64,000 nt of DNA, from NCBI GenBank assembly GCA_965112735.1, contig OZ218960.1:1798001-1862000 (forward strand), in the 5' to 3' direction. Positions 15,875 to 36,923 of this stretch are shown one piece after another. The stretch comes from Phaeosaccion multiseriatum (lineage: Eukaryota; Protista; Ochrophyta, other classes). The stretch's first letter is position 1. The number at the start of each line of letters is the position of its first letter. The position numbers and the translations under genes are program-made. The notes beneath the pieces are model-generated. The model had not been told where the DNA came from, did no database searches, and worked only from the letters and a program-made list of their open reading frames with translations.

Positions 15875-17284
15875 ATGGTGAAGCCCCACTTTGGGCCTGA
15901 GTACGAGTACCCTGTACTACGACTTGCTGAGTATGAGAAGCGAGAGCTGGAGAGACGGATAATGGGCCCCTCCACCCAAAGGACCCAGGAAGCCTGCTTC
16001 TCAGAGGCAATTCGCCTCTGTGACCCGCCTGCGGATTTCTTCGTTGAGCTTGGCAGGACCAGCACCAGCAGCAGTGGCAGCAGTGTATACATCCATAAAG
16101 AACCGCAGTTTGCTTCTGCTTTTTTTGGCGGAAGTCTCGTTTCTTTCGAGGGCGGCATGAGAGACAGAAGGCGGAGGCTGGGCTTCTGGGATGAGCTTGA
16201 GGCTATCTTTGACAGCAGCGACAGCAGCGACAGCAGCGACAGCAGCGACAGCAGCGACAGCTGGGACTTGGTTGACGGCAGCGACCCCTCCTCCTCCTTC
16301 TCCTCCTTGTCGGAAAGGGTGTTGGACCACTTGCTTAACGAGCCCGAAATGCTGGAGTTCGACGAGCTTGGTGAGTGAGTGGGCTTGGCGTCCATGTGTA
16401 TCCTTTTTCTTTGGTTACAATGGTACTTGCTTTAGTATTTGTTACTAGGCCCCCTGACGCTCTTGTCCCTTGCTACTCCTCCCCCCCCCCTCTCCTGCTC
16501 CTCCCAACGACGAACAACAACAACAACAACGACAACAACAACGACGACGACGACGACGTCGACGACGATTAAAAAAGGGTTCGGCGACGAGGCTACGGAC
16601 GATTGTATGATTGAGAACTATACCAACCTCTCCACCTCGTGCGCGGAAGCCCTCGTGCAGACCTTCGTCGATCGCGTCACCGTCGGTCTCGAGTCCTGGA
16701 AGATCGACAAGGAGGCCATGAGGCACAGCATGCACATGCATCATGGACGTGGGCGTGGGTACGGTCACGGGAGGGGGGGGGGGCACGGGTATCGGGGTGA
16801 TGACCCCGCCTGCCACCGGATGGTGAAGTTCTTCTTTGAGGTGTTGGCGTTGTTTGCACTGTTCAAGGTGCTCAGGTATTTCTACCGAGAGATCTTTGTG
16901 ATGCTCAATCCGCGCAGGGGACACCCCCAAGCCCGTCGCGCACGTGCTGCTGCTGCTGCTGTATCACCAACTGATGCAGTGGAGGGCGGTGCTGGGGGCA
17001 GTGGAGGCGGGCAGGCTAGTGCCCCTCTCCCTGCGAATGCCCGCAGGGGCTATCCGGGGCTGGCATCGTTGGGTTGGCTCAAGCTGCCAGCCCGAGGAGG
17101 AGGAGGAGGGGCAGCAGGTGGTGATACGGCAGATGCTTACGCATACACGGCACTCACAGGCACTGAGGAGACATCCGCTGGAGCTGGTGGGAGGAGCGTC
17201 ATCGTGACTGGCATGCCCGTGAGCGTGACGGCTGTGATGGCCTCGGCGCCGCAGCAGGACCACCAGCCGTCGCAAGTGGTGTAA
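15875..17284 (+). CDS. Single-pass membrane protein with a Cys-rich (GLG1-repeat-like) luminal module; may have a further upstream exon
   Basis: Intron 16371-16577 (GTGAGT...AAG) joins ELG|FGDEATDDCMIENYTNLSTSCAEAL in frame. Upstream motif ACFSEAIRLC, a His/Gly-rich linker, and hydrophobic segment MVKFFFEVLALFALFKVL. Confidence 0.65.
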
Positions 17285-20110: not shown

Positions 20111-22539
20111 AGTGGGTGAGTGGGTGAGGAGGGGAAAGGCAGTCACGCATGAGTAAAAAAGGGTGGGTCTGACGTCCAACTTCGAACTTCAACACCCTAA
20201 CCGAGCAAGCAAGCGAGCAAGCAAGCAAGCTGGAACTTAAACTTTCCTCTCTTCCTCCAGGCATCTCAGGCCTCCCAGGGGGGCATAACCAAAAGTGCAA
20301 TAAACTGACACACTGACTAAAAAAGAAGTCACTCATTCCCACTCCCTCACTCACGGGGCACCGCACCTTGCCGCGTGCTGATCGTCAACCACCGTGTTGC
20401 TGTCGAAGGGAAGCAGCCACCTAAGGCGATGGTCAGCACAGCCAGGAGAGGGGAAGAGGGAGGGAGACAGAGAGGGAGGGAGAGGGAGGGAGGGAGGGAG
20501 GGAGGGAGGGAGGGAGGGAGGGAGGGAGGGAGGGAGGGAGGGAGGGAGGGAGGGAGGGAGGGAGGGAGGGAGGGAGGGAGGGAGGGAGGGAGGGAGGGAG
20601 GGAGGGAGAGGGGGAGGGAGGGAGAGGGGGAGGGAGGGAGAGGGGGAGGGAGGGAGAGAGAGAGGGAGTGAGATGAGTTGGGGAGTGCAGGGAGGAGAGG
20701 CCAGGGGAAAGGCATACGAAGGGAGAAAGAAGGGGAGGCGCATGAGGTAGGTGGCAAAGAAATCCAGCATTTCAACACCCTCCCTCCCTCCCTCCCTCTC
20801 TCCCTTACCTACTAAGCTGTCCCTTCATGACCCCCGCGCTCTTGGCTGCCCTGCGCAGATGAGCCATGAAGATGAGGCCTGCCTCCGCCGCTGCCGCGGT
20901 GTAGGCAAGATCAGAGTCGTCTCGGATGGGCCGTCGCAGCATGAACTCCACCTGTTGGTGGTACAGGACGTCGGTCGTCACAGGGTCAGAGGAGGGTGTC
21001 GCGGCATTTAGGTCGTCAGGCAGATGTATGGGCAGGCAGACAGATAGGCGGTCGGACAGGTAGGTGTGGGGAAGGGCGTGCGTGAGTGAGTGAGTGAGTG
21101 AGTGCGTGCGTGAGTGAGTGAGTGCGTGCGTGCGTGCGTGCGTGCGTGTGTGTGTGTGTGAGAGAGAGAGAGAGGTGGGGGGGGGGCGGGAGGGAGGAGT
21201 TCTTATTTGCTAAATAATGTGCAACACAATCAAGGCCAGTGTCAAGCGCATCCTGACTTCTTCGGTCAATCAAGGCCTGCTTCACTCCCCTCGTCCCCTC
21301 CTCGCCTCACCTCTGCCCATCTGCTGTTCAAGTTGGCACTCCAAGGCGTCGTCGCCCGCGTGCCTTGCATCACCAACTCCTGCCCCTCCCGCTCCCGCTC
21401 CTCCTCCTGACTGCCTGCAGCGACGGGGTCATCCTCAGCTTCTACCGCTTCTTCTGCTGCCACCACCGCCGCTGCTACTGCCTCGGTTTCTGCTGTCGCT
21501 TCTCCCTCCATCCTCCTCTGCACCTTACTGCGCCCCTCCTCCTCCTCCTCCTGCTCCTCCTGCCCCTCCTGCTCCTCCTCCTCCTCCTCCTCCTCCTCCT
21601 CCTCCTCCTCCTCCTCCTCCTCCTCCTCCTCCTCCTCCTCCTCCTCCTGCTCCTCCTCCTCCTCCTCCTCCTCCTCCTCCTCCTCCTCCTCCTCCTCCTC
21701 TACCTCTACATCCTTCTCCTCTTCCCCCCCTTTCTCCTCTTTCTCTGTCTCCTCCTCCTGCTCCTCCTCCTCATCCTCCTCCTCATCCTCCTCCTTTTCC
21801 TCTGCCTCTACCTCCTCCTCCTCTACCTCCTCCTGTTCCTTCTTCTGCTGCTCCTCCTCCCTCTCTTCCTCTAACTCGTCCTGCTCCTCCCCTACCTCCT
21901 GCTCCTCCTGCTCCTCCTCCTCCTCCTCCTCCTCCTCCTCCTCCTCCTCCTCCTCCTCCTCCTCCTCCTCCTCCTCCTCCTCCTCCTCCTCCTCCTCCTC
22001 CTCCTCCTCCTCCTCCTCCTCCTCCTCCTCCTCCTCCTCCTCCTCCTCCTCCTCCTCCTCCTCCTCCTCCTCCTCCTCCTCCTCCTCCTCCTCCTCCTCC
22101 TCCTCCTCCTCCTCCTCCTCCTCCTCCTCCTCCTCCTCCTCCTCCTCCTCCTCCTCCTCCTCCTCCTCCTCCTCCTTCTCCTCCTTCTCCTCCTCCTCCT
22201 CCTCCTCTACGGACGAGACTCTTGGTACCCTCTTGCCCTCTCCTGTTGCCCCCCCACCTCCCTTCGGAGGAAGCCCCACTTCGCTTGGCTCCGCTTCGCT
22301 CCGTCGGTGGACCATGCTCTGTCTGACCCCCCTCGGGTTGCGCGGCGAGATGCGCCCACTTCCCCCTACTCTGGCTGCAAAACAGCTCTCCCCACTCGTC
22401 TGATCCCCTCCTCCTTCTTCTTCTCCTCCTCCTCCTCCTTCTTCTTCTCCTCCTCCTCCTCCTCCTCCTCCTCCTCCTCCTCCTTCTCCTTCTCCTCCTC
22501 CTCCTCCTCCTCCTCCTCCTGCTGCTGCTCCTGCTCTTG

Positions 22540-22574
<35 letters not shown>

Positions 22575-22768
22575 CTTGCTGCTGCTCCTGCTGCTGCTCC
22601 GGCGGCTGCTTGCTTCACTGCTGCCGTTGCCGCTGCAATGGCTGCTGTCGTTGCCGCGGCTGCTGACGGGACCGAGGAGGAAGAAGATGCGGATAACGAT
22701 GACGACGCCGCTGCTTCCACCACTTGGGGAAGGGGCGACGCTGTATCACCAACGCCCGACGTTGTTGT

Positions 22769-22803
<35 letters not shown>

Positions 22804-25800
22804 ATGATGACGATGCTTGGGAGGACGTGATGAGTATGCACGAGCGCGTGCGGCGAGAACGGTCGAGGGGTTGGCGCAAGTCCGCGCAGTGTGCAGCATC
22901 GTGCTGATGGTGCTCCTGATTGTTTGTATCACCAACGTACCAAGTAAGGAGTAAACCAACGAGGGGATGTGGTGTAGCGATCGAGGAGGCGGCGATGAGT
23001 CGGGCGATCAGTATTGACCAGATCTACAGGCCGTATATGTATGACCAGAGCCAAACTAGACAGAAAGCAAGGGACGAGGTCTGAAGAGGACAAGCGTTGC
23101 TCCACCATGCTACTTCCTATCCTACCCGTCCGTCGCTCGCGAACGCTCAGCGCCCCTGGCAGAGTCTCAAGCACTCCGGGCTGAGTCTCAAGTCCTCAAG
23201 TACCTCCCCTCTCTTGTCCATTCCCTCTCTCCTCACCTCAGTCGGCAGCGGTTGCTGCAGAGATTGGACCCTTCGGCGCCTCCGAGGCAAGCTGTCGCCA
23301 CCACCGCCACCACCTCTACCACCACCTCTACCACCACCACCACCACCTCCACCTCCACCTCCACCTCCACCATCACCACCACCACCGCCACCGCCACTAA
23401 CGTCTTTGAGCGTACTACCTCTACTGCTCTTGCTGACGCTCTCTCGGCGGCAGGGGCCAGCGCCATCATCGAGCGGAAGGAGGTGGAGCTCTTCTTCCTG
23501 CTGGCCCATACCCGCAGCTCCGTGACAGTGTGAGGAGTGGTGTGAGCTCTCCTCACTCGCATGTCCTCCTCCTCCTCCTCCTCCTCCTCCTCCTCCTCCT
23601 CCTCCTCCTCCTCCTCCTCCTCCTCCTCCTCCTCCTCCTCCTCCTCCTCCTCCTCCTCCTCCTCCTCCTCCTCCTCCTCCTCCTCCTCCTCCTCCTCCTC
23701 CTCCTCCTCCTCCTCCTCCTCCTCCTCCTCCTCCTCCTCCTCCTCCTCCTCCTCCTCCTCCTCCTCCTCCTCCTCCTCCTCCTCCTCCTCCTCCTCCTCC
23801 TCCTCCTCCTCCTCCCCCTCCCCCTCCTCCTCCTCCCCTCTCCTTCTTCCTGCTCTTCTTCGTCTTCTTCTCTTTGTGCAGCGACAAGGACGAGGGCACT
23901 ACGACAGTGGACAGACTCGCACTTGCCATCATCGCTTCTTGGACGGACTGGCAAGACTCAGACGGGGTTAAGAAGAAAAGGTGGTCGCTGTGCGGCGGTT
24001 GCTGCTGCTCCGGCCCGGGCATAGGCAAGGCCTCGCTCCTATTTCCGCCCCCCCCCCCTCCTCCTCCTCCCCCTCCTCCTCCTCCTCCTCCTCCTCCTCC
24101 TCCTCCTCCTCCTCCTCCTCCTCCTCCTCCTCCTCCTCCTCCTCCTCCTCCTCCTCCTCCTCCTCCTCCTCCTCCTCCTGTTGCTGCTAAAGCATCTCGC
24201 TGCTCAAGAACGCGCGGTGACTCTGACGGACTCACCAAAGCTCGGTGCCTCGGAAGCGACAACGCCACGCCACCACCACCACCACCACCACCACCACCAC
24301 CACCACCACCACCGCCGCCGCCACCGCCGCCAATGCCACCTCCCCCTTTTCTAGTGCAACTAGTACTACCATAACAACTACTGCCTTCTGCTGCCCTGTC
24401 CTCCCCCCCGTCGGTGCCTTGCCTTGAGAGCTGAAGCAGGCGGGAGTTCACTCGATCAAGGGCGCGTGTTCGATTCCTCGTCACCGCCGTGGCGGCCATC
24501 TGCTGCCCCCCTGTGGGTGTGGTTCTCTCTGTGTGTCTCTCCGTATGTCTCGGTCGCTGCTGGTGGTGCGGGGGTAGGCTCCTCCCTCCCTCGACCATTC
24601 CACTCGCCCCCTTACCGCTCCCTCCCCCCCCGCCCCCTCCTCCTCCTCCTCCTCCTCCTCCTTCTCCTCTTCCTCCTCCTGCTCCCCCTCCTCCTGCTCC
24701 TCTTTCTCCTCCGGTGGTAGTCTCCGTCGAGGGATGAGAAGAGCGTTTGGCAGCATCTGCAGTGAAGCCCAACTGCAGCCTGAGGGCGGCAACTTCCCTC
24801 TCCAGAAGCATATTCCGCACCTCCAGCACAGCGCGGCCTCCTCCTCCTTCTCCTGGAGCAGTTGGTGATACAGCAGTACCACCAGCAGGGGAAGAGGAAG
24901 AAGCGCCAGTGGAGGACAGACAACCTCCTCCTCCGCCGCTGTAGGAAAGGGCTCCGAGCCCGCTCTTGCTCGTGCTTAGACTGAGCCCCGCAACGCTGCT
25001 ATCCCCCAAGTCCAAATGTATTGCACCACCACCTCCTCCTCCTCCTCCTCCTCCTCCTCCTCCTCCTCCTCCTCCTCCTCCTCCTCCTCCTACTCTTCCC
25101 TCACCTCCCGGGCCCTGCCCTCCTCTCTCTTGCCTCTGCCCTCCTCCTCCTTCACAGCCTTCAGCAGCGCATTCACTGGTGGCGACAACTGCGCTCCGTC
25201 TCCGCCGTGCCGTATCACCACCTCTACGCTTGCTGCCTCCGCCCAGGCGACCCCGTTCCTGCAGCAATCTCTGCTCCGCCAAAGCAGCCGCAGTAGCCCC
25301 TCCTTTTTTGATTTCAACAGCAGCCCCCTGGACAGCAGTGTGACCCCTCCCCCTCCGTCCAATCCTCTCCCCGCCCCTCTTGACCCGCTGCTGCCGGACA
25401 ATTCGGGGCTGAAGTGGGGGAGAAGGCGTGAGAGGTGGTGCTACAGAGCCGTCGCCAATGTCGACACCTTCGTCACACGCCCGCAGGGCCTCTTTCTCCT
25501 CCTCCTCTTCCTCCTGCTCCTCGTTCTGCTCCTCCTCCTCCTCCTGCTGCGGCTGCTGCTGCTGTATCACCAACTGCTGCTTTGACTTCTTCCGCCCCTC
25601 ATTCGACGCCCGCCTAAGTCTCCTGCGCCGTCTCTCCTTCGTTTCCAAAAGGCAAGGCGAGGCCACATCGAGGGCAAAGTCTCCCCCCGTCCCCATGGGA
25701 GAGAGAGGAATCGCGTGGCCGTTCTTGTCCTGAGGTGATGCGAGGAGAGGAGGAGCAAATGCGTCCGGGAGAGGCCTCACGTATGACAGTGATAGGGAAA

Positions 25801-26743
25801 GTAAATCCTCCTCATCCAGGGGGTCGTCGCTTTCCACGCTTCCCTTCTTATCCTCGCCCTGCTTGCTGTCCTCCTCCTCCTCCTCCTCGTCGGCATCGTC
25901 GTCGTCCTCGTTTGCCTCCTCGTCATCCTCGTCATCTTCCTCGTCATCCTCTTTCTGTTCCTTGTCCTCCTCCTCCTCCTCCTTGTCCTCCTCCTCCTCC
26001 TCTTCCTCCTCCTCCTCCTCCTCCTCCTCCTCCTCCTCCTCCTCCTCCTCCTCCTTCTCCTCCTCCTCCTCCTCCTCCTGTTGCTGCTGCTGGTGCTGCC
26101 GCCGCCTGCGGACAGATAATTTTCGCGCGCCCTGCATCGGAGTGGACGAAGCGCCTTCTTTCCCCGCCGCTACGACTTCTGCTGTCACCGCCCCTGCTAC
26201 CTGCTTGTGGCGCTGAGCTTTACCCGACTGTCTGCGTCGCCGCTCAACCACAGATCCGTTCGTGGGCGCTGGTCGGCCGCCGGCGGACCCTCCCTTCCTT
26301 TTCTCCAAGAGACCTTTCTCTTTGACTCTGAAGACCCCCTCCTCATTCTTATACCCCCCCTCTACGGCTGCGACTGGTGCTGGTGCTATTGTTTCTTCGT
26401 CTTTCTGGGCCCTGCTGCCGCTGCGCTGTCCTGGCGCTGCCGTTCCCCCCTCCCTCAATTTCAGAGGGTCCTTCCCTGGCTTGAACCTCTTCTTGCTGCT
26501 GCCGCTCTTGCTGCTTGGCTGCACCAAAACGACCAAAGGATGGCCTCCACTGTCTTCTTTGCCGTCAACGCCGCGGCATCTGGCATCCTCAGTGACTGTC
26601 GCAGCAGTTCTCACTCCAGCTCCACCGTGTGCGGCTTTGGACTTGCTGGCAAGGCACGGGAGGGGCTGGGACCTGGCGCTCCTGTCCCTTTCGTCACCGC
26701 TGCCGACGGAGAAAGAGAGGTAAAGAAACGAGAAGGAGAGCAA
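18103..26743 (-). CDS. Very large multi-exon hypothetical protein, mostly low complexity, with a small globular region encoded by short exons at about 19.2-21.3 kb
   Basis: Long ORFs 23147-26743, 21266-22879 and 18103-19260, plus phase-compatible short exons (VEFMLRRPIRDDSDLAY.., RWLLPFDSNTVVDD.., SVGEVRSSMPPEVAAKLEE.., LVRIKIADDNDLNT..). Start codon and some junctions are unresolved; it could be two genes. Confidence 0.45.
21540..24180. repeat. Very long coding (CCT/GGA)n trinucleotide tracts
   Basis: Pure runs at about 21913-22172 (poly-E on - strand) and 23565-23815 (poly-G on - strand). Similar runs at 8785-8975. Confidence 0.95.
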
Positions 26744-27106
26744 GAGTCAGAGCCAGCGAGGAGGAGAAGGATAGACTTGTCTTTTACTTGACCACTCACC
26801 GCCCACGGCCTGAAGTCAGCCCTGGTGGTGGATTAAGAGAGTCGGCTTTTCTGCCACCTTCTCCCCTGGGCTGGACGGTTATCACCCTCCGAGTGGCCTT
26901 CGTGGCGCCATTGCCCATAGCGCGCTTCTTTACTTTGCCCTTGTGTTGTTTGCAATTGCATATCAATTGGCAATTGACTTGGTGTCTTGGTGTAACGTTT
27001 TTGCAACAAAAAGGTCAAACTCAAACTTTCCCCCCGAATGGTAGTCTTTTTTGCTATAACATCTTCTGGCTAGGTGCTTGCACCGAGTCGAGCGCGGCCC
27101 AAAGCC

Positions 27107-27928
27107 ATGGCTTCTTCGTCTGCTGCGAGGACGAACTTGACGTCGAATGACGTCTTCATCACCAACAACAAGCTCGGGGATGGAACCTTTCGTACCTGCG
27201 TGGCGGGCACGTTCATTGGAGGAAACAGGAACAATCAGGAAGCGGCTTGCAAACGCTTTAAACCTCACTTTAGGCAGTTTGAGGACGAGTACTTTGCGGC
27301 GGACTTCAAGATTGCAGACAAGAGCATAGCATGGGCAGAGCAGTGGAACGAGTTTTGCGAGGTTGGAAAGGAGATTCTCATCTCGCGAGGAACCATCCAC
27401 CGCTCCCGCTCTGGCATTCAATACTTGGTGGAGCCGCTGATTCGCAACTATAGAAAGTGGACTTCTAATTCTGGTTGGATATTGGAGGAAAATAGCGACG
27501 GGGTCCACGCAATGGAGGCATTTACCCACTACTCCTACCACGCCTCAAGCGGGAATCTCATTGTGACCGACTTGCAGGGCCGCTACAAGTATAACCGCTT
27601 CGCCAGATCGAAGAGCCGCTTCGAGCTGTCGGACCCTGCCATTTGCTCACGGCGCCGCGACTACGGTCCCACAGACATGGGAGCCAAGGGCATCGACTCG
27701 TTCTTCGCTAACCACCAGTGCAACGACTTTTGCAAGCCGCATTGGCAGACGCCGCGCAGAGTAAGGCAGTGGTTCCCTCGCACCTCAGGCACGTCCATGA
27801 TGTCCTCTTTGATGACTCCGCAGCTCAACCTGCAGAGCCGCACCACCTTTCGACTGGGCATGGACAACATCATGGAGGAAGAGTCTGAGGAAGACTCCGA
27901 CGATGGCGTCATTGGCTACTGTTTCTGA
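27107..27928 (+). CDS. Alpha-kinase (eEF2K/MHCK family), stand-alone and intronless
   Basis: Motifs LGDGTFRTC, ACKRFK, YLVEPLI..YRKWTSNSG, MEAFTHYSY..LIVTDLQG, LSDPAI, YGPTDMGAKGIDSFFANHQCNDFC (Zn-binding H/C). Confidence 0.93.
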   Translation: MASSSAARTNLTSNDVFITNNKLGDGTFRTCVAGTFIGGNRNNQEAACKRFKPHFRQFEDEYFAADFKIADKSIAWAEQWNEFCEVGKEILISRGTIHRSRSGIQYLVEPLIRNYRKWTSNSGWILEENSDGVHAMEAFTHYSYHASSGNLIVTDLQGRYKYNRFARSKSRFELSDPAICSRRRDYGPTDMGAKGIDSFFANHQCNDFCKPHWQTPRRVRQWFPRTSGTSMMSSLMTPQLNLQSRTTFRLGMDNIMEEESEEDSDDGVIGYCF

Positions 27929-29514: not shown

Positions 29515-30780
29515 TTACAGCTTGCTCACGGTCTCGCCTTGCTCCAACACCCCGCGGAGCTGCTCCGTCGTATCACCAACGGGCGTGCCTGGCCTAACCC
29601 ACACCGTATGCATGCCCAGCGCTCTGGCCGTCTTGAGATTAGCACCAATGTCGTCCAGAAAGATGCATTCAGACGGCTTTGCCCCAAGCAGCGTACACAC
29701 CAGACGATAAACGCCAATGTCCTCCGGTTTGCGCTGTCCCATCAGAGAGGAGCGCACCACAGCGTGTGCCACGCCCCGAAGCTCCTTGGAAAGCAAGCTC
29801 GGGCCGGACCCACGCAATGCTCCTGTATCACCAACTGCTGCTGCCAGCGGGGCCCGGGGTTCAGAGCGCGGCGGCCTGTAGGCCGGGTCCACCAGGAAGT
29901 CATTGGAAAGCACCCCCACGAGGTAGCCCTGTCGCCGCAACTCCCTCGCGTAGGCCACCATCTCCGGTCGAGGCGTTGCCCCCGCCCGTGCGATGCGCCG
30001 AAACAGCTCTGCGCAATCGATGGAGCCGGCCTCAAGGCAGGCCAGCCTCCGCCGCACCTCCTTCTCCTCCTCTGCACCGGCACTCGGGGAGGAGGAGGTG
30101 GACTCCCTCCTCGCTCCTCCCCCTCCTCCTCCTCCTCCTCCTCCTCCTCCTCCTCCTCCTCCTCCTCCTCCTCCTCCTCCTCCTCCTCTACTACTACTAC
30201 TGCTGTTGTTACTACTGCTACTGGTACTCCTGCTTCCTTTTCTGCCGCCACTGCTGCTGCTGCCACGACCATTCCGCGAGAGAAAGTACTTCATGTATGC
30301 CTCCTTGCTCCTCGCAGAAGTCAGTTCTCTGCCGAGCCTCTCCAGAAAGCCGTCGGACAGCGTCTCCTGCCCCTTCTCCAGGCGCCGAAACAGCGCCCCA
30401 CCTCCTTCTTCGCTCGCGAGCGCAACGCTAATGTATCCCGCGGGAAGAGGATCTACACCCCAATCGCTAAATGGAAACCCCCCCGCAACAGATCCACCGA
30501 CCCGATCTCGCCTTCCACCTCCACCTCCTGCTCCTCCTCCTCCTCCTCCTCCTCCTCCTCCTCCTCCTCCTCCTCCTCCTCCTCCTCCTCGTCGTCGTCG
30601 TCCTCCCTCCCTCTCAAACCGCGCGATTGCCTCCAGAGGAGAGGCGCTCAGTACCCCTCCAACATCGAAGATGACGGCTTTGATGGCGCCATGCCGAGCC
30701 CTCTTTCGGATCAGGGGTAGCGGGCGACGACCAAGAGGAGGGGGGCTGCAGCTCGCATTCTCCACTTGTCCTCCTGTCCT

Positions 30781-30815
<35 letters not shown>

Positions 30816-33634
30816 CCTCTTCTCTGGACCCCTGCAATGGCACACATCCTCCTCCTCCGCCTCCTCCCCCCCGTCCTCCTCCTCCTCCTCCGTCTGCCGC
30901 CGCCGCCGCTGCAGGAGCAGTGTGGGCCATTGCATCCGCCTGCTGCCGAGAGAGACTCAACATGTGGGGCCACACACTCGCGATGTGCGCCGCATAGGAG
31001 CTACTCGCCACCCCCTGCGCCAGGCGAGCGGCAATACCGTGCGCAATGACACAATTCTTGAAGAAGATGAAGGCGAGGTAGAACGGGAAGCAGTCGAACA
31101 GGGCGTCCTCCTCCCCGCTGAGGCGCTGGTAGACGTCGACGAGATCGGAGGAGTGGGGGATGCCGAGGCGCTTCAGATCCAGGCCCTGCAAACCAGACAG
31201 AGGTCCCATCTGTTGCATGTCGTGTGTGTGTGTGTGCATGTGTGTGTGCGTGTGTGTGCGCGGGTTCGTATGTCGATGTGTGTCAGGGGTAGCTATGGTG
31301 AGATAAAGATTTCATCAAACAAGAGACACACATACCAAAGTTAAAGCAAAGCAGCATAGTGCAGAAACACGTATGTTTTAGTTTCAGTCTATTTGACCCC
31401 CAACCAATGGCCAGCCCGGAAAGGAGCGGCCCGCTTCATAGCTAGCCTGCCCTGAGGCTGACCGCCCGTTTGACACGTGTTCAAGTACGACACGAGCTCA
31501 CCGGCAGACAACGGGCAGACAACCAACACGTGCACAGCAACACCTCACCTGCACCGTGGCGCCAGTGGCAGGGGCCCTTAGATGGTGGCCTATGGTAAGG
31601 CTGGCGAGGTCTGCCATAGGGTGGCCCAGCGTGGAAAGCTCCCAGTCCAGCACAGCGATCACTCGGGGCTCGGTCGGGTGGAGCATTACATTGTCTGCTT
31701 GACGGAGTGAGGTTGGGGGGGAGGGGGAGGTGTTTGTCAAGTCGGTAGTCGGTCAGGAAGGAATTGGACAGGGAGGGGGCAGGGGGAGAGGGGAGTGGAA
31801 GTCAAGAGATTATGAGGAGAGGGAGAGGAGGGAGAGGGGAGTGAGACAGGAGGAGCGAGGTGTTGTTCAAGTCGGTAGTGGGTAGGTCAGTCATATGGAT
31901 CCGGGACGCCAGACTGCACTCGCAGTCCCCCCCCCCCCCCCCAATGCACTCACCTACGCGAAAGTCGCCATGCACGAGCGAGGTCCTGTCCGGTACCATT
32001 CCGCTGTCCAGCAGTCGCATCAGATCTCTACTCAGCTCCTCCAATCCCGGGACCGCCCCTGCGTCCTCGGCCTGTCGGGCACTGACTCGCACCAGAGTCT
32101 TCAATTGGCGCTTGAAATAGCCACCACCGGCAGGTGATTGTGTAGGTGCAGATGTAGGTGTGACTGCTCCTCCTAGTGGGCTTGATTGGTGGGCTGGGAC
32201 TCTCCTGCCCCCCCCAAAGGAGTAAAGGCCGCTGCTCTGTAAGTCAACGGAGTGGATGGCGACAAGGACCTCCACGCAGGAGAGATAGGCCGCTCGGCGC
32301 TCACTGGGGGACATGCCTTTGGGTTGGCGGCGACAAGAAGGGGGAGGGAGGATGGAGGAAGGAGGAGGGACCAGGCAGCAAGGGATGGGTAAGAGCAAGA
32401 CGATAACACACACACACACACACACTCACAGAGAGTGAGAAAGAAAGAGAGAGGATGAGAGGGGAGGGGAGGAGGGACGGTTGGGTTGTCTTTACGTGTG
32501 TCATTCTCGAAAGAAAGGACTACGCCCTCTACGACGCGAGTGCGCCAATCTCTCTCTCTCTCTCTCTCTCGGTCTCTCTCTCTTCTCTCTCTGTCTCTCT
32601 AGTCTCTATCTTTCTCTCGCCCTGCACCCATTCCTCACCCGGCAGCGAAGGGTTGGAGAAGACTCTCCCCTTGACGTATTGCATGACGTAGAACGGCGTA
32701 CCAATGATGGCCTCATCCGTGCACAGGAGAAACGTCTTTGGGACGGGAACATCCGTGGGCTAGAGGGATTTAGAGGCATACGGGGAGGTAGGGGAGGGGA
32801 GGGGAGGGCAGGGGAGGGGCACGATTCGGTTAATACGCACTCCGGAAAAGCCGCCGAGAGAGTGACTGAAGAGTAAGTAAGCGCGGGAAAAGAGTTGAGC
32901 CAGTGTATCCGGTGGGAAGAGGGTGGGTGTACAGTGCTCGGAGGCGACAGATATTCTGAGGCGATGACTCCCACGGTGAAGGGATCCAAACATTGCATGG
33001 GTCAAGGGACGCAGCCGGTAGCACATGATGCTACTCACCTCCAGCGCCCGTAGCACCCGATACTCGCGCTCCACCGCGTGGGCACTGCTCACCTGCGATA
33101 CAGAGAGAGCGAGAGGGGCAGAGGGTCGAAGGCTTGGGTTGGGTGGGGTGGGGGGAGGGGAAGAGGTCGCAGACAGTAGAACGGATTTATTTTGCTGAGG
33201 CGGTCAACAGGTCATCACCCCCGGACAGTCGCGCTCTATTCGTATCGTACCTTTACTGATGCGGGCTTCTTCCGCAGCACGAACTCAGCCTGCAGGAGAG
33301 GTGGCTCGTTCGGAGAGCTACTGCTGCTATCGCGAGGATGGCGGAAGTGTACTCGCAGGAGGAAGGTAGGATTGCTCTGACCGACACCAAACTTGCTCAG
33401 CTCGATGGAGAAGGCTTGATCCTGCTGCTGCTCCCCTTCTCGAATCTTACTGTTGCCGCTGCCGCTGCTGCTCCTACTTCTTCCATAGCGCTCTCGGCTG
33501 GTACTGATCTCTGTAGCGTGGTCTAAGAGACGCAGGTCGTGTCGATGTGTCCAGAGGTAGTCTTGGAGAGCGGCAGTGCTGAAGTCGAATTGAGCGGGGC
33601 GAGGATGGCTCTGCATCACAGGGAAGGTGCCTCC
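29515..33634 (-). CDS. ACAD10/11-like phosphotransferase (APH/choline-kinase fold) fused to a C-terminal HAD hydrolase; no acyl-CoA dehydrogenase domain
   Basis: Exons 33634-33251, 33092-33039, 32759-32639, 32316-31954, 31694-31549, 31209-29515. Kinase motifs [62 protein letters not shown] motifs [32 protein letters not shown]. Confidence 0.9.
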
Positions 33635-35502
33635 CTTGTCTCCGAGAGACAAGAGAGCAGAGAAGAAGGAAGAAAAAAGAAAAAAAAATAATGACTTACT
33701 CTCTTTCCTCTTTCCCCCCTCCCCTCATTCCTTGCTGCGGCGCAAGCATACGTTTCGGCCGAAAAAGTTGGGTCAGATCGAAGGGTCCGAGCCACGATGA
33801 CGCTCCCCGAGCGCGCTCCAGCGAGATTCAGGGCATCTGCACCAAGCTGCAACTGTGCAAATGCGCCCATAACATACAGGGGTACGTCTTTGTCCCACGA
33901 CAGATTCTCATGCAGCGCTGGCAGACCTTCGACGCAATGGATGGGGTGCTGCTCCTGGAGTGAGGAGAGGATTGGCACCAGGTCGAGATCAAGGTTCCCT
34001 CCGGTAGCCAGCCACACGTAATCGAAGCATGCAGTGTTACCATTGTCGAATCGGACGTGGATGTCTCCCTCGAGCGCGGCGCTGCTCGGGCGCCACTGTG
34101 CCTGCACCACGAGGGCCTCTTCGACAATTTTAAACTCCGTACTATTCGCCCGCGACGCGCACTCGAGAAGCTCTCCGTAGGCATCGTCTGACATGGATCC
34201 GCCACCACGGAGTGTGGTGTTGAACTGCAGACGCTCTCGCGGATCTTCGAGTTTCTTGAATTCGCGTATCACCTCTGGGCGTTTGAGGCCCACGTACTCG
34301 TTGTCGACGTCGAACGGTTTTCGTGTGATGGTCCGGCGGGCGCACAGAGTGACAGACGACGCCCCGCGACGGATCGCGACCTGCGCAAGATGCGCAGCCG
34401 TCTGGCCCCCGCCGACAACCAACACTCGGCGGCCACTCACCGCAGAATCATTGGCCAAGTCGAGCAGCCACGACTGGAGCGGAGCAGCATGCTGCACACG
34501 GTGAGCCAAGTCGTGCTTGACGTCGTGGTCATCGCGGTCATCATCGTGGTCATCATCGTGGCTCAGTGAGTCCTTGAGCTCGTCGACCCACCATGGCATG
34601 GTCGTCCGCATCGCTTGGAACGCTGGCCCAGGTCCCATCGAGCATACGACCCGGCGCGTCACATACTGACGGCCGTCTACGAGTCGCACCTCGAAGGTTC
34701 GGGCCTCGTTGGCCACTGGGGGAGGCTCAATGATACGAATGTCGGCGACGGTTCCGCGTTCCACGAGCGGCGCAAGGTTGTACCGCTCTACCAGCGTCGC
34801 ACAAAAATCAAGAAAGAGCTGGGTGCTGGGAACGCGGAAGGGCGCGTAGTATCCAGCTTTGCGACAGGCCTCCCGATCAACATGGCCCATGAGCCTGATC
34901 TCGTCTTCTCGGTTCTCCAAGATTGCCCATTCGCTCATGCTCTCGTAATCTGAAGGGCCAGGGTGCATCCAGGTGTGGCTTCTCAAGTAACGAATGTTAT
35001 AGGCTTCAAAGTTGTTCTTCCACTGCGTCATGAATTCTCCGTGGCTGTCAATGACCACTGTTCGTGGGAGACTCTCCACCGCATCAAACCGTTTGTGAAG
35101 CTTCGCGCGGATGGTAGCTCTCGCACTTGCGGGTCGTGCCTTCGTCATGAAGACGGTGCGTTCAGCTTCAGTAAACAAGTCAGGCTGGTCATCGACGAGA
35201 CGTGTCAGAAGAGACAGGGCGTGAGGCCCGGCCCCAATGACAAGCAGATCCAACAACTCCGGTCCAGCCTCTTTGGTCTTGGACTCAGCCGATGCCGGTG
35301 GCATGGCTGCTGGTTTGCGAAAGTGTGATGTCTTCGGAGGGCTTGTGTCCTGGTGGAGGCAGCCCGGGCAAGCATCGCCAGCACCGCGGTCCTTCCGACC
35401 GATACACTCGTCACTGCTGCTGCTGCCCGTGATCCCATCGTGTCCACGTTGGACTGCCGCGACGGTTGAGGCATCGGCGGGACCGGGAAAAACGTCAAAC
35501 AT
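33616..35502 (-). CDS. FAD/NAD(P)-dependent oxidoreductase (lysine N6-monooxygenase-like flavoprotein); probably the first exon of the APH-HAD gene
   Basis: Two Rossmann motifs LVIGAGPHAL and VLVVGGGQTA, plus W..NF....IRYLRS, PSTQLFLDFC, DYVWLATG, GLP.L, LYVMGAFAQLQLG..ALNLAGAR. The ORF tail (VSHYFFFFF..) reads through a candidate intron at 33699-33635. Confidence 0.88.
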   Translation of the reverse strand: MFDVFPGPADASTVAAVQRGHDGITGSSSSDECIGRKDRGAGDACPGCLHQDTSPPKTSHFRKPAAMPPASAESKTKEAGPELLDLLVIGAGPHALSLLTRLVDDQPDLFTEAERTVFMTKARPASARATIRAKLHKRFDAVESLPRTVVIDSHGEFMTQWKNNFEAYNIRYLRSHTWMHPGPSDYESMSEWAILENREDEIRLMGHVDREACRKAGYYAPFRVPSTQLFLDFCATLVERYNLAPLVERGTVADIRIIEPPPVANEARTFEVRLVDGRQYVTRRVVCSMGPGPAFQAMRTTMPWWVDELKDSLSHDDDHDDDRDDHDVKHDLAHRVQHAAPLQSWLLDLANDSAVSGRRVLVVGGGQTAAHLAQVAIRRGASSVTLCARRTITRKPFDVDNEYVGLKRPEVIREFKKLEDPRERLQFNTTLRGGGSMSDDAYGELLECASRANSTEFKIVEEALVVQAQWRPSSAALEGDIHVRFDNGNTACFDYVWLATGGNLDLDLVPILSSLQEQHPIHCVEGLPALHENLSWDKDVPLYVMGAFAQLQLGADALNLAGARSGSVIVARTLRSDPTFSAETYACAAARNEGRGERGKRVSHYFFFFFLPSSLLSCLSETREAPSL

Positions 35503-35786
35503 CTTATGCTCAACGAATAATGTAATGTCGGGGCCCTTCCTTACGCGCTTCCACTTCGATTGATCCTCCTCTGGTGCCTCTGCATCTGCCGCTGGTGCCG
35601 CTGCCCCGCTGTCTCCTCTTCTTTTTTTTTCTTCTCTCTGATTTTATCTTCTAAAATCTTGTGCCACTACACACCCCCCCCGGCTAAACACCTGCCCTCG
35701 CTCTCTGTTGTGTTGGTGCTCCAGGAGCCACAGATGGAAATGAACCACCGGTTTTTTTTCTTCTTGATTCCCCCCCCCCCCCCTTT

Positions 35787-36923
35787 ATGGAGCACATTAC
35801 CGATGAAGAGGGGCGCGTGGAGGGGCAAGAAACGCTCCCTCCCCCCGAAGCCAAGTCTGCAGTAGAGTCGGAGGATTGGTTTGCTTCCGCTGGTGGGGCT
35901 GGGCTTGAGGGTGGGAGCACGCCTCCATGGGACTCGGAGGGAGCTGGGGAGGCTGAGTCCAGCGACGATGGAGGGTCTGCGGCTTACGAAGGAGGAGCGA
36001 ACGAAGCACCGTATGAGGCTTGCCACGAGACCTTGACCAAGCATGAGCTGTTCCAGGTCGTGATGGAGTACGTGGGTGGGGGAAATTTCCTCTTTGTGGC
36101 TGGTGCGAGTCCGGAGTGGAGGATCCGCTACAGCCATTCGTACCCAGCCTTGAAGACAAACTTGGCGTCTGTGGTCAGCTCTGTGGAGTGCGTGAGATGG
36201 GCGATGAGTAAGGGCCTCGAGCTGAGTGAGAAGACTTTTGAGGTCGCTGCCAAGCACGGCGATGTAGAAGTGTGCAAGGTTCTCCACGGCAAGGACTGTC
36301 CCTGGAATGAAGAAGTATGCTTGGCAACGGCAAGCAATAAGAAGCATGGTCTAAGCGTTCTCCAATGGCTGCGATCAGAGGATCTTCCGGGGAAAGAAAG
36401 GTGTCCATGGGGTGAATATATTTGTGGAGAGGCTGGAGCTTTTGGGAATCTGGAGATGCTAATGTGGCTGCTATCGGGTGACGTGCAGGCCCCGTATGAC
36501 AGCCTCAGTTGGTACCACATTTGTGAGGGGGGTCACCTTCCCATCTTGGAGTACGTGCTCCGTCATCCCCTCACGAGAGCCTTGCTGGAACAGAATATAG
36601 ATGGAATGTGGCGCATGGGGGCTGGGTTCGCTGCGATGAAGGGCAAGCTTGAGGCAATGCAGTTTCTTCACGCCAATGCCCGCGACCTCTGTGGTTGGAA
36701 TGAGTGGGTCTGTATGCATGCAGTCAGGAGTGCCAAGAGCCTGGCAATGCTCAAGTGGCTCCGGTCAGAGGAAGTGCAGTGTGCGTGGAACGAAATGTCG
36801 TGCCCACAGGTCATCAGGGACGAAGCAAACCAAGGTGGTATTTATATCATCGGCGCCGAGACCTTTGCAGAGATCAAGCAGTGGGTGCATGCCAATGGAC
36901 ACCCCTGCCACTGCAAGGACTGA
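35787..36923 (+). CDS. Ankyrin-repeat protein of the 'CPW' type with an F-box-like N-terminal motif, intronless
   Basis: Repeats AAKHGDVEVCKVLHGKDCPWNEEVC, LQWLRSE..RCPWGEYICGEAGAFGNLEMLMWL, AAMKGKLEAMQFLH, MLKWLRSEEVQCAWNE. N-terminal ELFQVVMEYVGGGNFLFVAGASPEWR. Confidence 0.85.
   Translation: MEHITDEEGRVEGQETLPPPEAKSAVESEDWFASAGGAGLEGGSTPPWDSEGAGEAESSDDGGSAAYEGGANEAPYEACHETLTKHELFQVVMEYVGGGNFLFVAGASPEWRIRYSHSYPALKTNLASVVSSVECVRWAMSKGLELSEKTFEVAAKHGDVEVCKVLHGKDCPWNEEVCLATASNKKHGLSVLQWLRSEDLPGKERCPWGEYICGEAGAFGNLEMLMWLLSGDVQAPYDSLSWYHICEGGHLPILEYVLRHPLTRALLEQNIDGMWRMGAGFAAMKGKLEAMQFLHANARDLCGWNEWVCMHAVRSAKSLAMLKWLRSEEVQCAWNEMSCPQVIRDEANQGGIYIIGAETFAEIKQWVHANGHPCHCKD

Follow-up and report, generated by a model that had tools for sequence, protein, structure and literature searches.

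Does Phaeosaccion multiseriatum, an alga related to brown seaweeds, join a flavin-dependent monooxygenase-like protein to an ACAD10-type kinase and a HAD phosphatase in a single polypeptide? The question is raised by a locus at positions 29515-35502, all of whose features lie on the minus strand of a 64,000-nucleotide (nt) stretch of the genome, here called the window. There, an intronless flavoprotein open reading frame (ORF) leads directly into a six-exon kinase-HAD gene, and a short candidate intron would connect the two in frame. Taken as a whole, the explanation that serves best is that two ancestrally independent genes now stand head to tail, form one transcription unit and yield a spliced fusion, a reading to which we give marginally less than an even chance. 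We present the finding as a candidate and not as an established discovery.

The flavoprotein ORF (33700-35502; 1803 nt, 601 codons up to the candidate donor) opens with an ATG at 35502, with Met67 (35304) as an alternative start in better agreement with orthologue N-termini, and closes on a codon boundary, ..GGA AAG AGA, followed at 33699 by GTAAGT. Removal of a 65-nt candidate intron predicted from the DNA (33699-33635, GTAAGT..ACAAG, 75% pyrimidine and 52% T) would continue the frame into kinase exon 1. When the exons and this linker splice were joined by script, the result was one open frame of 1521 codons ending in SKL-TAA. An alternative CAG acceptor at 33613-33611 would give an 89-nt intron (33699-33611), likewise in frame with the kinase, and a GAG acceptor at 33641-33640 would give a 60-nt intron and a stand-alone flavoprotein ending ..GKRTREAPSL. 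Left unspliced, the ORF continues for 27 further codons (VSHYFFFFFLPSS..) until it meets a TGA (33618-33616) that shares a base with the kinase ATG at 33616-33614, forming TGATG (33614-33618). The sequence-only reading that drew attention to the locus had put forward the coordinates, the frames, the in-frame splice of the segment 33699-33635, the TGA/ATG overlap and the lack of intergenic room, and all of these hold on the sequence.

Several properties of the linker argue for the join. From the end of the conserved flavoprotein to the kinase ATG there are 161 nt (33777-33617) with no stop codon; they contain a GTAAGT donor that matches the consensus and falls between two codons, as well as a pyrimidine tract and two acceptors that keep the frame. 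The space between the genes is too small for a 3' untranslated region (UTR), a poly(A) site and a promoter, and we count for a fusion the contrast between this tight spacing and the roughly 1.5 kb that separates the kinase-HAD gene from its convergent neighbour. In 20,000 dinucleotide shuffles of the linker, a stop-free path that leaves from a GTRAGT donor and enters the kinase frame at an acceptor other than GAG arose by chance in 0.36% of shuffles, or in 3.5% when GTRAG donors were admitted, which favours a genuine in-frame splice path. The acceptor type is also in use nearby, as orthologue alignment validates an AAG acceptor at 32317 in the kinase-HAD gene itself. That site bears out one of the AAG acceptors cited earlier from elsewhere in the window; those at 16577 and 37754 are plausible only.

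The tail of the flavoprotein looks like the linker that a fusion would need. Beyond residue ~581 it lacks conservation and the structural model shows it as disordered, both of which suit a linker. GC content at third codon positions is 0.66 in the conserved core but drops along the tail, first to 0.46 and then to 0.37; falling third-position GC in a disordered tail is as expected of recently recruited non-coding DNA. Most homologues end 0-20 residues, and a few up to ~70 residues, past a ..SGSVLVARALL helix that corresponds to window residue ~575, which leaves unconserved the 26 codons that precede the donor and the 27 that follow.

The same linker can be read as the boundary between two overlapping transcription units that make two separate proteins, the in-frame GT..AG path being a coincidence. 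The flavoprotein would then be read to the TGA at 33618-33616 with an unconserved tail of ~50 residues, and the kinase-HAD would be expressed from a compact T-rich promoter or 5' UTR. We regard this as a serious possibility, although we give it appreciably less than an even chance, and a number of observations that weigh against the fusion speak for it. The candidate intron does not look like the five validated introns of the kinase-HAD gene: it measures 65 nt and is rich in T (52% T), whereas they measure 158-339 nt and are rich in C, and the base at -1 of its donor is A instead of the G found at all five of theirs. On both strands of the window GTAAGT occurs at chance frequency (21 seen, ~21 expected), and GTGAGT is enriched ~6-fold (165 copies against ~29 expected). 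Donor sites of P. multiseriatum are overwhelmingly of GTGAG type, and the consensus-looking GTAAGT donor accordingly weighs less. The T-rich tract at 33695-33643 resembles the tract at 35602-35637 in the bidirectional promoter between the flavoprotein and an ankyrin-repeat gene, the run before the ankyrin ATG at 35787 and a T-rich tract upstream of an ORF starting near 26585, and may itself be the 5' region that belongs to the kinase gene. The kinase, moreover, still has an ATG where its orthologues begin. Among flavoprotein homologues, C-terminal tails of 0-70 residues are tolerated, the linker is stop-free in 17% of the shuffles, and an AATAAA lies ~420 nt downstream in kinase intron 1 (33191-33186), although that hexamer is at chance frequency. 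Against two units, the kinase gene would have to contain the 3' UTR and poly(A) site of the flavoprotein, whose coding region would in turn have to contain the kinase promoter, and an in-frame consensus donor with an acceptor is improbable by chance, as the shuffles indicate. A scan for the intron lengths of the window by codon usage and ORF bridging was too noisy to be of use and missed validated introns; it noted solely that there were few candidates shorter than 120 nt.

Comparison with relatives also weighs against the fusion. The flavoprotein and the kinase-HAD are separate proteins in every relative examined, and when all exons were compared by tblastn with all fetched loci, the two genes were non-adjacent in the loci of five out of five relatives. 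No flavoprotein gene lies within 3.9-10 kb upstream of the kinase-HAD gene in Ectocarpus sp. 12 or in another brown-alga-like contig. Conversely, the flavoprotein gene of Discosporangium, of a metagenomic stramenopile and of another Logan assembly has no introns and is flanked by unrelated genes. Among the ten longest of the best 150 of 1340 flavoprotein representatives, none has an APH or HAD domain; these proteins carry instead, for example, Surp, GT25, TyrRS or Zn-cluster domains. No PF13434 was found in the best 120 of 1041 kinase-HAD relatives, whose lengths range up to 1559 residues. The check for the same architecture in related algae was negative: no protein with both domains came to light in these two large searches. 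Since the genes are unlinked and the proteins uncombined in relatives, the juxtaposition appears to be specific to P. multiseriatum or its near kin. The comparison agrees best with the alternative offered by the sequence-only reading, in which the APH-HAD gene recently acquired an intronless gene at its 5' end. A pyrimidine tract was sought upstream of the orthologues in Ectocarpus and at locus L006 and none was found, which is uninformative. Neither Met-initiated version of the unspliced flavoprotein ORF has an exact match on record in public protein collections, and word searches of these collections gave no self-match; the collections seemingly hold no annotation of the P. multiseriatum genome.

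The public runs that hold the locus number four, all of DNA from the same sample; their contigs follow the genome sequence through every intron, none of which is spliced out. This, too, weighs against the fusion. The same runs bear on a more trivial account, in which the juxtaposition was produced by the assembly or one gene of the pair is a copy in decay, leaving no function in need of explanation. Their sample may be the source of the assembly itself, in which case the runs are not independent, and in all four the Logan contigs are interrupted at the (GGA)n repeats of the last exon, where the repeat lengths are those given by the assembly only. Nevertheless, contigs of all four runs span 32825-35650, including the junction, with no difference from the genome, and one contig spans 32603-35650. 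Contig joints listed for the region all fall within (GGA)n/(GCA)n repeats and were set aside as artefacts. Both halves of the locus are intact, with every invariant column and catalytic motif retained and no frameshifts, which argues that both are under selection. Because contigs span the junction and the ORFs are intact, we rejected the pseudogene and artefact readings, which we consider extremely improbable.

A third possibility is that the mRNA is left unspliced and is bicistronic, with the kinase-HAD translated by termination-reinitiation at TGATG or by leaky scanning. The overlap of stop and start would suit such a mechanism, and some green algae are known to make polycistronic mRNAs from nuclear genes. 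Reinitiation after an ORF of 628 codons is very inefficient, however; leaky scanning would need to bypass many ATGs, and we found no ochrophyte case of such a mechanism documented in the literature consulted. We consider translation from a bicistronic message very unlikely.

Weighing these points together, we hold that a real spliced fusion, as far as sequence can speak to it, has a chance close to even but not above it. The domains themselves are on firmer ground. The kinase-HAD gene has six exons and five GT-AG introns (158, 279, 322, 259 and 339 nt), and in alignments all five junctions match uninterrupted orthologue sequence, with KKPASVK|..|PTDVPVP and LPG|..|DN among the joined stretches. 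Exon 1 (33251-33634 if spliced to the flavoprotein, or from the ATG at 33616 if independent) encodes the GQSNPTF loop and FVLRKKP with the beta3 Arg; after intron 1 (33250-33093, 158 nt), exon 2 (33039-33092) carries the alphaC Glu and is followed by intron 2 (33038-32760, 279 nt). Exon 3 (32639-32759) covers positions 53-85 of the APH profile and precedes intron 3 (32638-32317, 322 nt), the one with the AAG acceptor. Exon 4 (31954-32316) ends in HGDFRV, with the catalytic Asp codon at 31966-31964, and intron 4 (31953-31695, 259 nt) separates it from exon 5 (31549-31694), which supplies the catalytic-loop DN and the DWE metal-binding motif (31647-31639). Beyond intron 5 (31548-31210, 339 nt), the last exon (29515-31209) encodes the end of the kinase C-lobe, Gly/Ala/Ser low-complexity runs derived from (GGA)n/(GCA)n and the HAD domain, and it ends with SKL (29526-29518) and a TAA stop (29517-29515).

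All database searches were run exon by exon, and in this way the three domain identities proposed from the sequence were matched: PF13434 on the flavoprotein, PF01636 (APH) on three kinase exons, and PF00702 with NCBIfam TIGR02247 on the last exon. The kinase motifs read from the exons, VLRKKP with the beta3 Arg, the alphaC Glu, HGDFRxDN (split by intron 4) and LDWELS, are features described for the ACAD10 kinase (bioRxiv 10.1101/2025.09.10.675409). Exon 4 alone matches ACAD11 (8v3v) and 3dxp among solved structures, and the Ectocarpus orthologue P0059 matches ACAD11 8v3v/8v3u at E 5e-52 and 3dxp at 3e-54. By sequence, then, the kinase is of ACAD10/11 type with an APH fold, in line with what had been proposed. 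A match of exon 5 to the NCBIfam model of GntI, an N-oxide kinase, at E 0.003 and 17 bits against a cut-off of 357, was rejected as generic APH-fold similarity.

The HAD part has motif I as VIFDVGGVL (30675-30649), motif II as LSND, III as RKP and IV as FLDD. Its motif I FDVGG retains only the first Asp of DxD, as reported for ACAD10 (PMC11342911). It scores 88 bits against a cut-off of 125 for TIGR02247, the "epoxide hydrolase N-terminal domain-like phosphatase", a low value that is probably due to insertions, and 47.5 against 29.4 for TIGR01509 (HAD-IA) and 35.8 against 26.4 for PF00702. Its best match among solved structures is the N-terminal phosphatase of soluble epoxide hydrolase (EPHX2) at E 9e-12, and the C-terminal part of the Ectocarpus orthologue likewise matches the phosphatase domain of that enzyme. 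The N-terminal lipid phosphatase of EPHX2, unlike the HAD of the window, has the full DxD motif where the window has D-V-G.

In-frame (GGA)n/(GCA)n microsatellites occur in the HAD exon at 30106-30271, 30503-30615 and 30774-30826, inside or before the cap region, and encode poly-Gly, poly-Ala and Ser-rich runs. The distance from motif I to motif IV is much expanded in brown-algal orthologues as well, at ~290-320 residues versus ~165 in ACAD10. The 11-mer GTTGGTGATAC has 14 copies in the window, 3 on the plus and 11 on the minus strand; two of them lie in the coding HAD exon (29570-29580 and 29825-29835, minus strand), one as CAGTTGGTGATAC beside a CAG run.

The protein differs from its animal counterparts in architecture. 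ACAD10 has the order HAD-kinase-ACAD and ACAD11 the order kinase-ACAD; the window protein has no ACAD, and its kinase precedes the HAD, although its kinase is of the same type as those of ACAD10, ACAD11 and the bacterial LvaA/LvaC. No ACAD Pfam family matches any exon, and the frame stops with SKL-TAA directly after the HAD, so the proposed absence of the ACAD domain stands. The HGD and DWE motifs come before HAD motif I, as in ochrophyte orthologues, the reverse of the ACAD10 order. The terminal SKL follows the tripeptide rule [SAC]-[KRH]-[LM] of the peroxisomal targeting signal type 1 (PTS1), and we infer from it that the kinase-HAD protein is peroxisomal. Of the animal proteins, ACAD11 resides in the peroxisome, and cleavage of ACAD10 separates its HAD-kinase portion from its ACAD portion (PMC11342911).

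This architecture is not peculiar to P. multiseriatum. A kinase followed by a HAD, with no ACAD, is found in Ectocarpus, Pylaiella, Laminaria, Choristocarpus, Chrysoparadoxa, Phaeothamnion and Nannochloropsis, in proteins of 805 residues in Ectocarpus siliculosus ("conserved unknown protein"), 856-890 in Ectocarpus spp., 930 in Pylaiella, 615 in Chrysoparadoxa and 663 in Nannochloropsis gaditana ("aminoglycoside phosphotransferase"). The ochrophyte orthologues end in PTS1-like tripeptides (-GKL, -AKL, -SKL, -NKL, -SRL, -ARL, -PRL). On sequence grounds, the ACAD-less kinase-HAD is a conserved ochrophyte family, stand-alone and PTS1-bearing, that is visible in databases though unstudied. The earlier statement that the HAD has moved to the C-terminus and that the ACAD domain is absent thus holds for this gene, but what it describes is shared by a whole family and is not particular to this locus. 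Outside the family, animal ACAD10 proteins come closest, at ~36% identity to the Ectocarpus-type orthologue P0050.

The window gene shares with this family the domain order, the kinase motifs, the DF..L..YLW start, the single-Asp FDxGGV HAD and the PTS1-like end. Complete orthologues begin MAIDFP.., aligned 9 residues after the window ATG at 33616, which itself lies 9 codons before the FDF..L..YLW motif. The window gene is set apart by long poly-Gly/Ser insertions and by three additional introns within the kinase N-lobe, and in those species no flavoprotein lies upstream. Introns 1-3 (32317-33250) are absent from the orthologues of Ectocarpus (L002:10214-10738) and L006:3894-4667, whose coding sequence is contiguous there; both instead carry an intron within the region that matches window exon 4. 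This points to lineage-specific gain or loss of introns in kinase-HAD genes. Other protists (in MMETSP, JGI and Logan data) have the opposite ACAD-less order, HAD and then kinase, in proteins of ~570-650 residues ending in -IKL, -IRL or -ITL (P0223, P0232, P0235, P0237 and P0266). As a kinase and a single-Asp HAD are joined in both orders with no ACAD, we argue that the pair works as a unit independent of phosphate elimination.

The flavoprotein is more distant from anything characterized. PF13434 (Lys/Orn N-monooxygenase) matches it at 31.6 bits against a cut-off of 21.3, over profile positions 184-336 only, the C-terminal half. Its dinucleotide-binding motifs are GAGPHA (~35235-35218) for flavin adenine dinucleotide (FAD) and GGGQTA (~34413-34396) for NADPH, and its conserved core spans residues ~80-575. 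In alignment it is 65% identical to a Discosporangium protein and retains more than 100 invariant columns. Sequence-only searches of the PDB, with the single sequence and as a profile, returned just Rossmann-motif matches, so a fold search was needed to place it. An AlphaFold2 model built with 12 homologues (predicted template-modelling score 0.70; residues 1-79 and 582-628 disordered) gave SidA, PvdA, KtzI, DesB and DfoA as top Foldseek matches at E ~1e-17, with target-normalised template-modelling scores of 0.67-0.72 and structure-based identity of 13-16%, and a structure-atlas search was concordant with a SidA/PvdA-type fold. By its model, the flavoprotein is a distant member of the SidA/PvdA-like fold of N-hydroxylating class-B flavin monooxygenases. 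The likeness lies in the predicted fold, both dinucleotide-binding motifs and the above-threshold PF13434 score; in contrast to the SidA/PvdA group, it belongs to a separate, eukaryote-rich family, with only that low identity, a half-profile Pfam match and no siderophore gene context. The family is large and mainly eukaryotic (1340 representatives at E<=1e-3, typically 450-650 residues). Its members are stand-alone proteins of ~500-550 residues in brown algae (Discosporangium), other stramenopiles, alveolates (Chromera, Amoebophrya) and haptophytes, and the orthologues have no PTS1. By analogy, the protein would use FAD and NADPH to oxygenate a substrate that probably bears an amine.

If the two genes are indeed joined, we propose a model in which they were brought head to tail in P. 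multiseriatum and are transcribed as one unit from a promoter shared with the divergent ankyrin gene. A young intron of 65 nt (or 89 nt), made from former intergenic DNA, would be removed, fusing the flavoprotein in frame to the kinase-HAD. The product, of ~1,520 residues, would be carried into the peroxisome by its C-terminal SKL, and the flavoprotein would piggy-back. That a lineage-specific intron ties a SidA-like monooxygenase to an ACAD-less kinase-HAD in such a peroxisomal protein, an architecture seen in no other organism searched, is possible, with a likelihood that we place somewhat under one half. The domains are of known kinds; the three-domain architecture, if real, would be new and lineage-specific.

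What such a protein would do can be approached through its relatives. The kinases of ACAD10 and ACAD11 phosphorylate 4-hydroxyacyl-coenzyme A (CoA) thioesters (PMC11342911, PMC12440821), and the ACAD10 kinase and HAD also act on ether-lipid intermediates, the kinase on 1-O-alkylglycerols (bioRxiv 10.1101/2025.09.10.675409). The HAD of Caenorhabditis elegans ACAD10 dephosphorylates 1-O-alkyl-2-acetyl-glycerophosphate, and that of human ACAD10 restrains the kinase. By analogy, the window kinase may phosphorylate a hydroxyl on a lipid-like substrate, a 4-hydroxyacyl-CoA or a 1-O-alkylglycerol, and the single-Asp HAD may dephosphorylate a lipid phosphate or restrain the kinase, in the compartment that houses ACAD11 and the first steps of ether-lipid synthesis. 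Because it has no ACAD domain, the protein would be unable to complete a phosphorylation-elimination route alone, and one has to suppose either a role that needs no ACAD or an additional dehydrogenase resembling LvaC. The route of hydroxylation, phosphorylation and dephosphorylation suggested earlier is speculation, and beyond the P. multiseriatum genome no co-occurrence or synteny was found that would support a metabolic link between the flavoprotein and the kinase-HAD.

The surroundings of the locus are as follows. Between the flavoprotein ATG and the ankyrin-repeat gene (35787-36920, plus strand) lies a divergent promoter region of 285 nt (35503-35786), with a G12/C12 run and long A/T homopurine-homopyrimidine tracts; the spacer would measure 482 nt if the flavoprotein starts at Met67 (35304). 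The convergent neighbour, ~1.5 kb from the kinase-HAD stop, is a single ORF (27074-27925, plus strand) with a complete alpha-kinase domain (PF02816, E 3e-40). Beyond it are two very long minus-strand ORFs 127 nt apart, 23150-26743 (1198 codons), with no Pfam match, and 21269-23023 (585 codons), probably exons of one large low-complexity gene.

Should the join prove false, the locus would be an ordinary case of two genes packed unusually tightly. If it is true, it would provide a Rosetta-stone clue to a SidA-like flavoprotein family found across eukaryotes and to the ACAD10-type kinase/HAD pair, for which it is actively debated whether the physiological substrates are 4-hydroxyacyl-CoAs or ether-lipid intermediates. 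It would tie an orphan flavoprotein family to the metabolism of hydroxylated-lipid or ether-lipid phosphates in peroxisomes, or to a chemistry of N-hydroxylation followed by phosphorylation. Regardless of the join, ochrophytes hold a conserved, PTS1-tagged kinase-then-HAD protein with no dehydrogenase, in an order the reverse of that in animal ACAD10, and the algae and protists that have the pair in ACAD-less form may serve as simple organisms in which to test the kinase-HAD unit.

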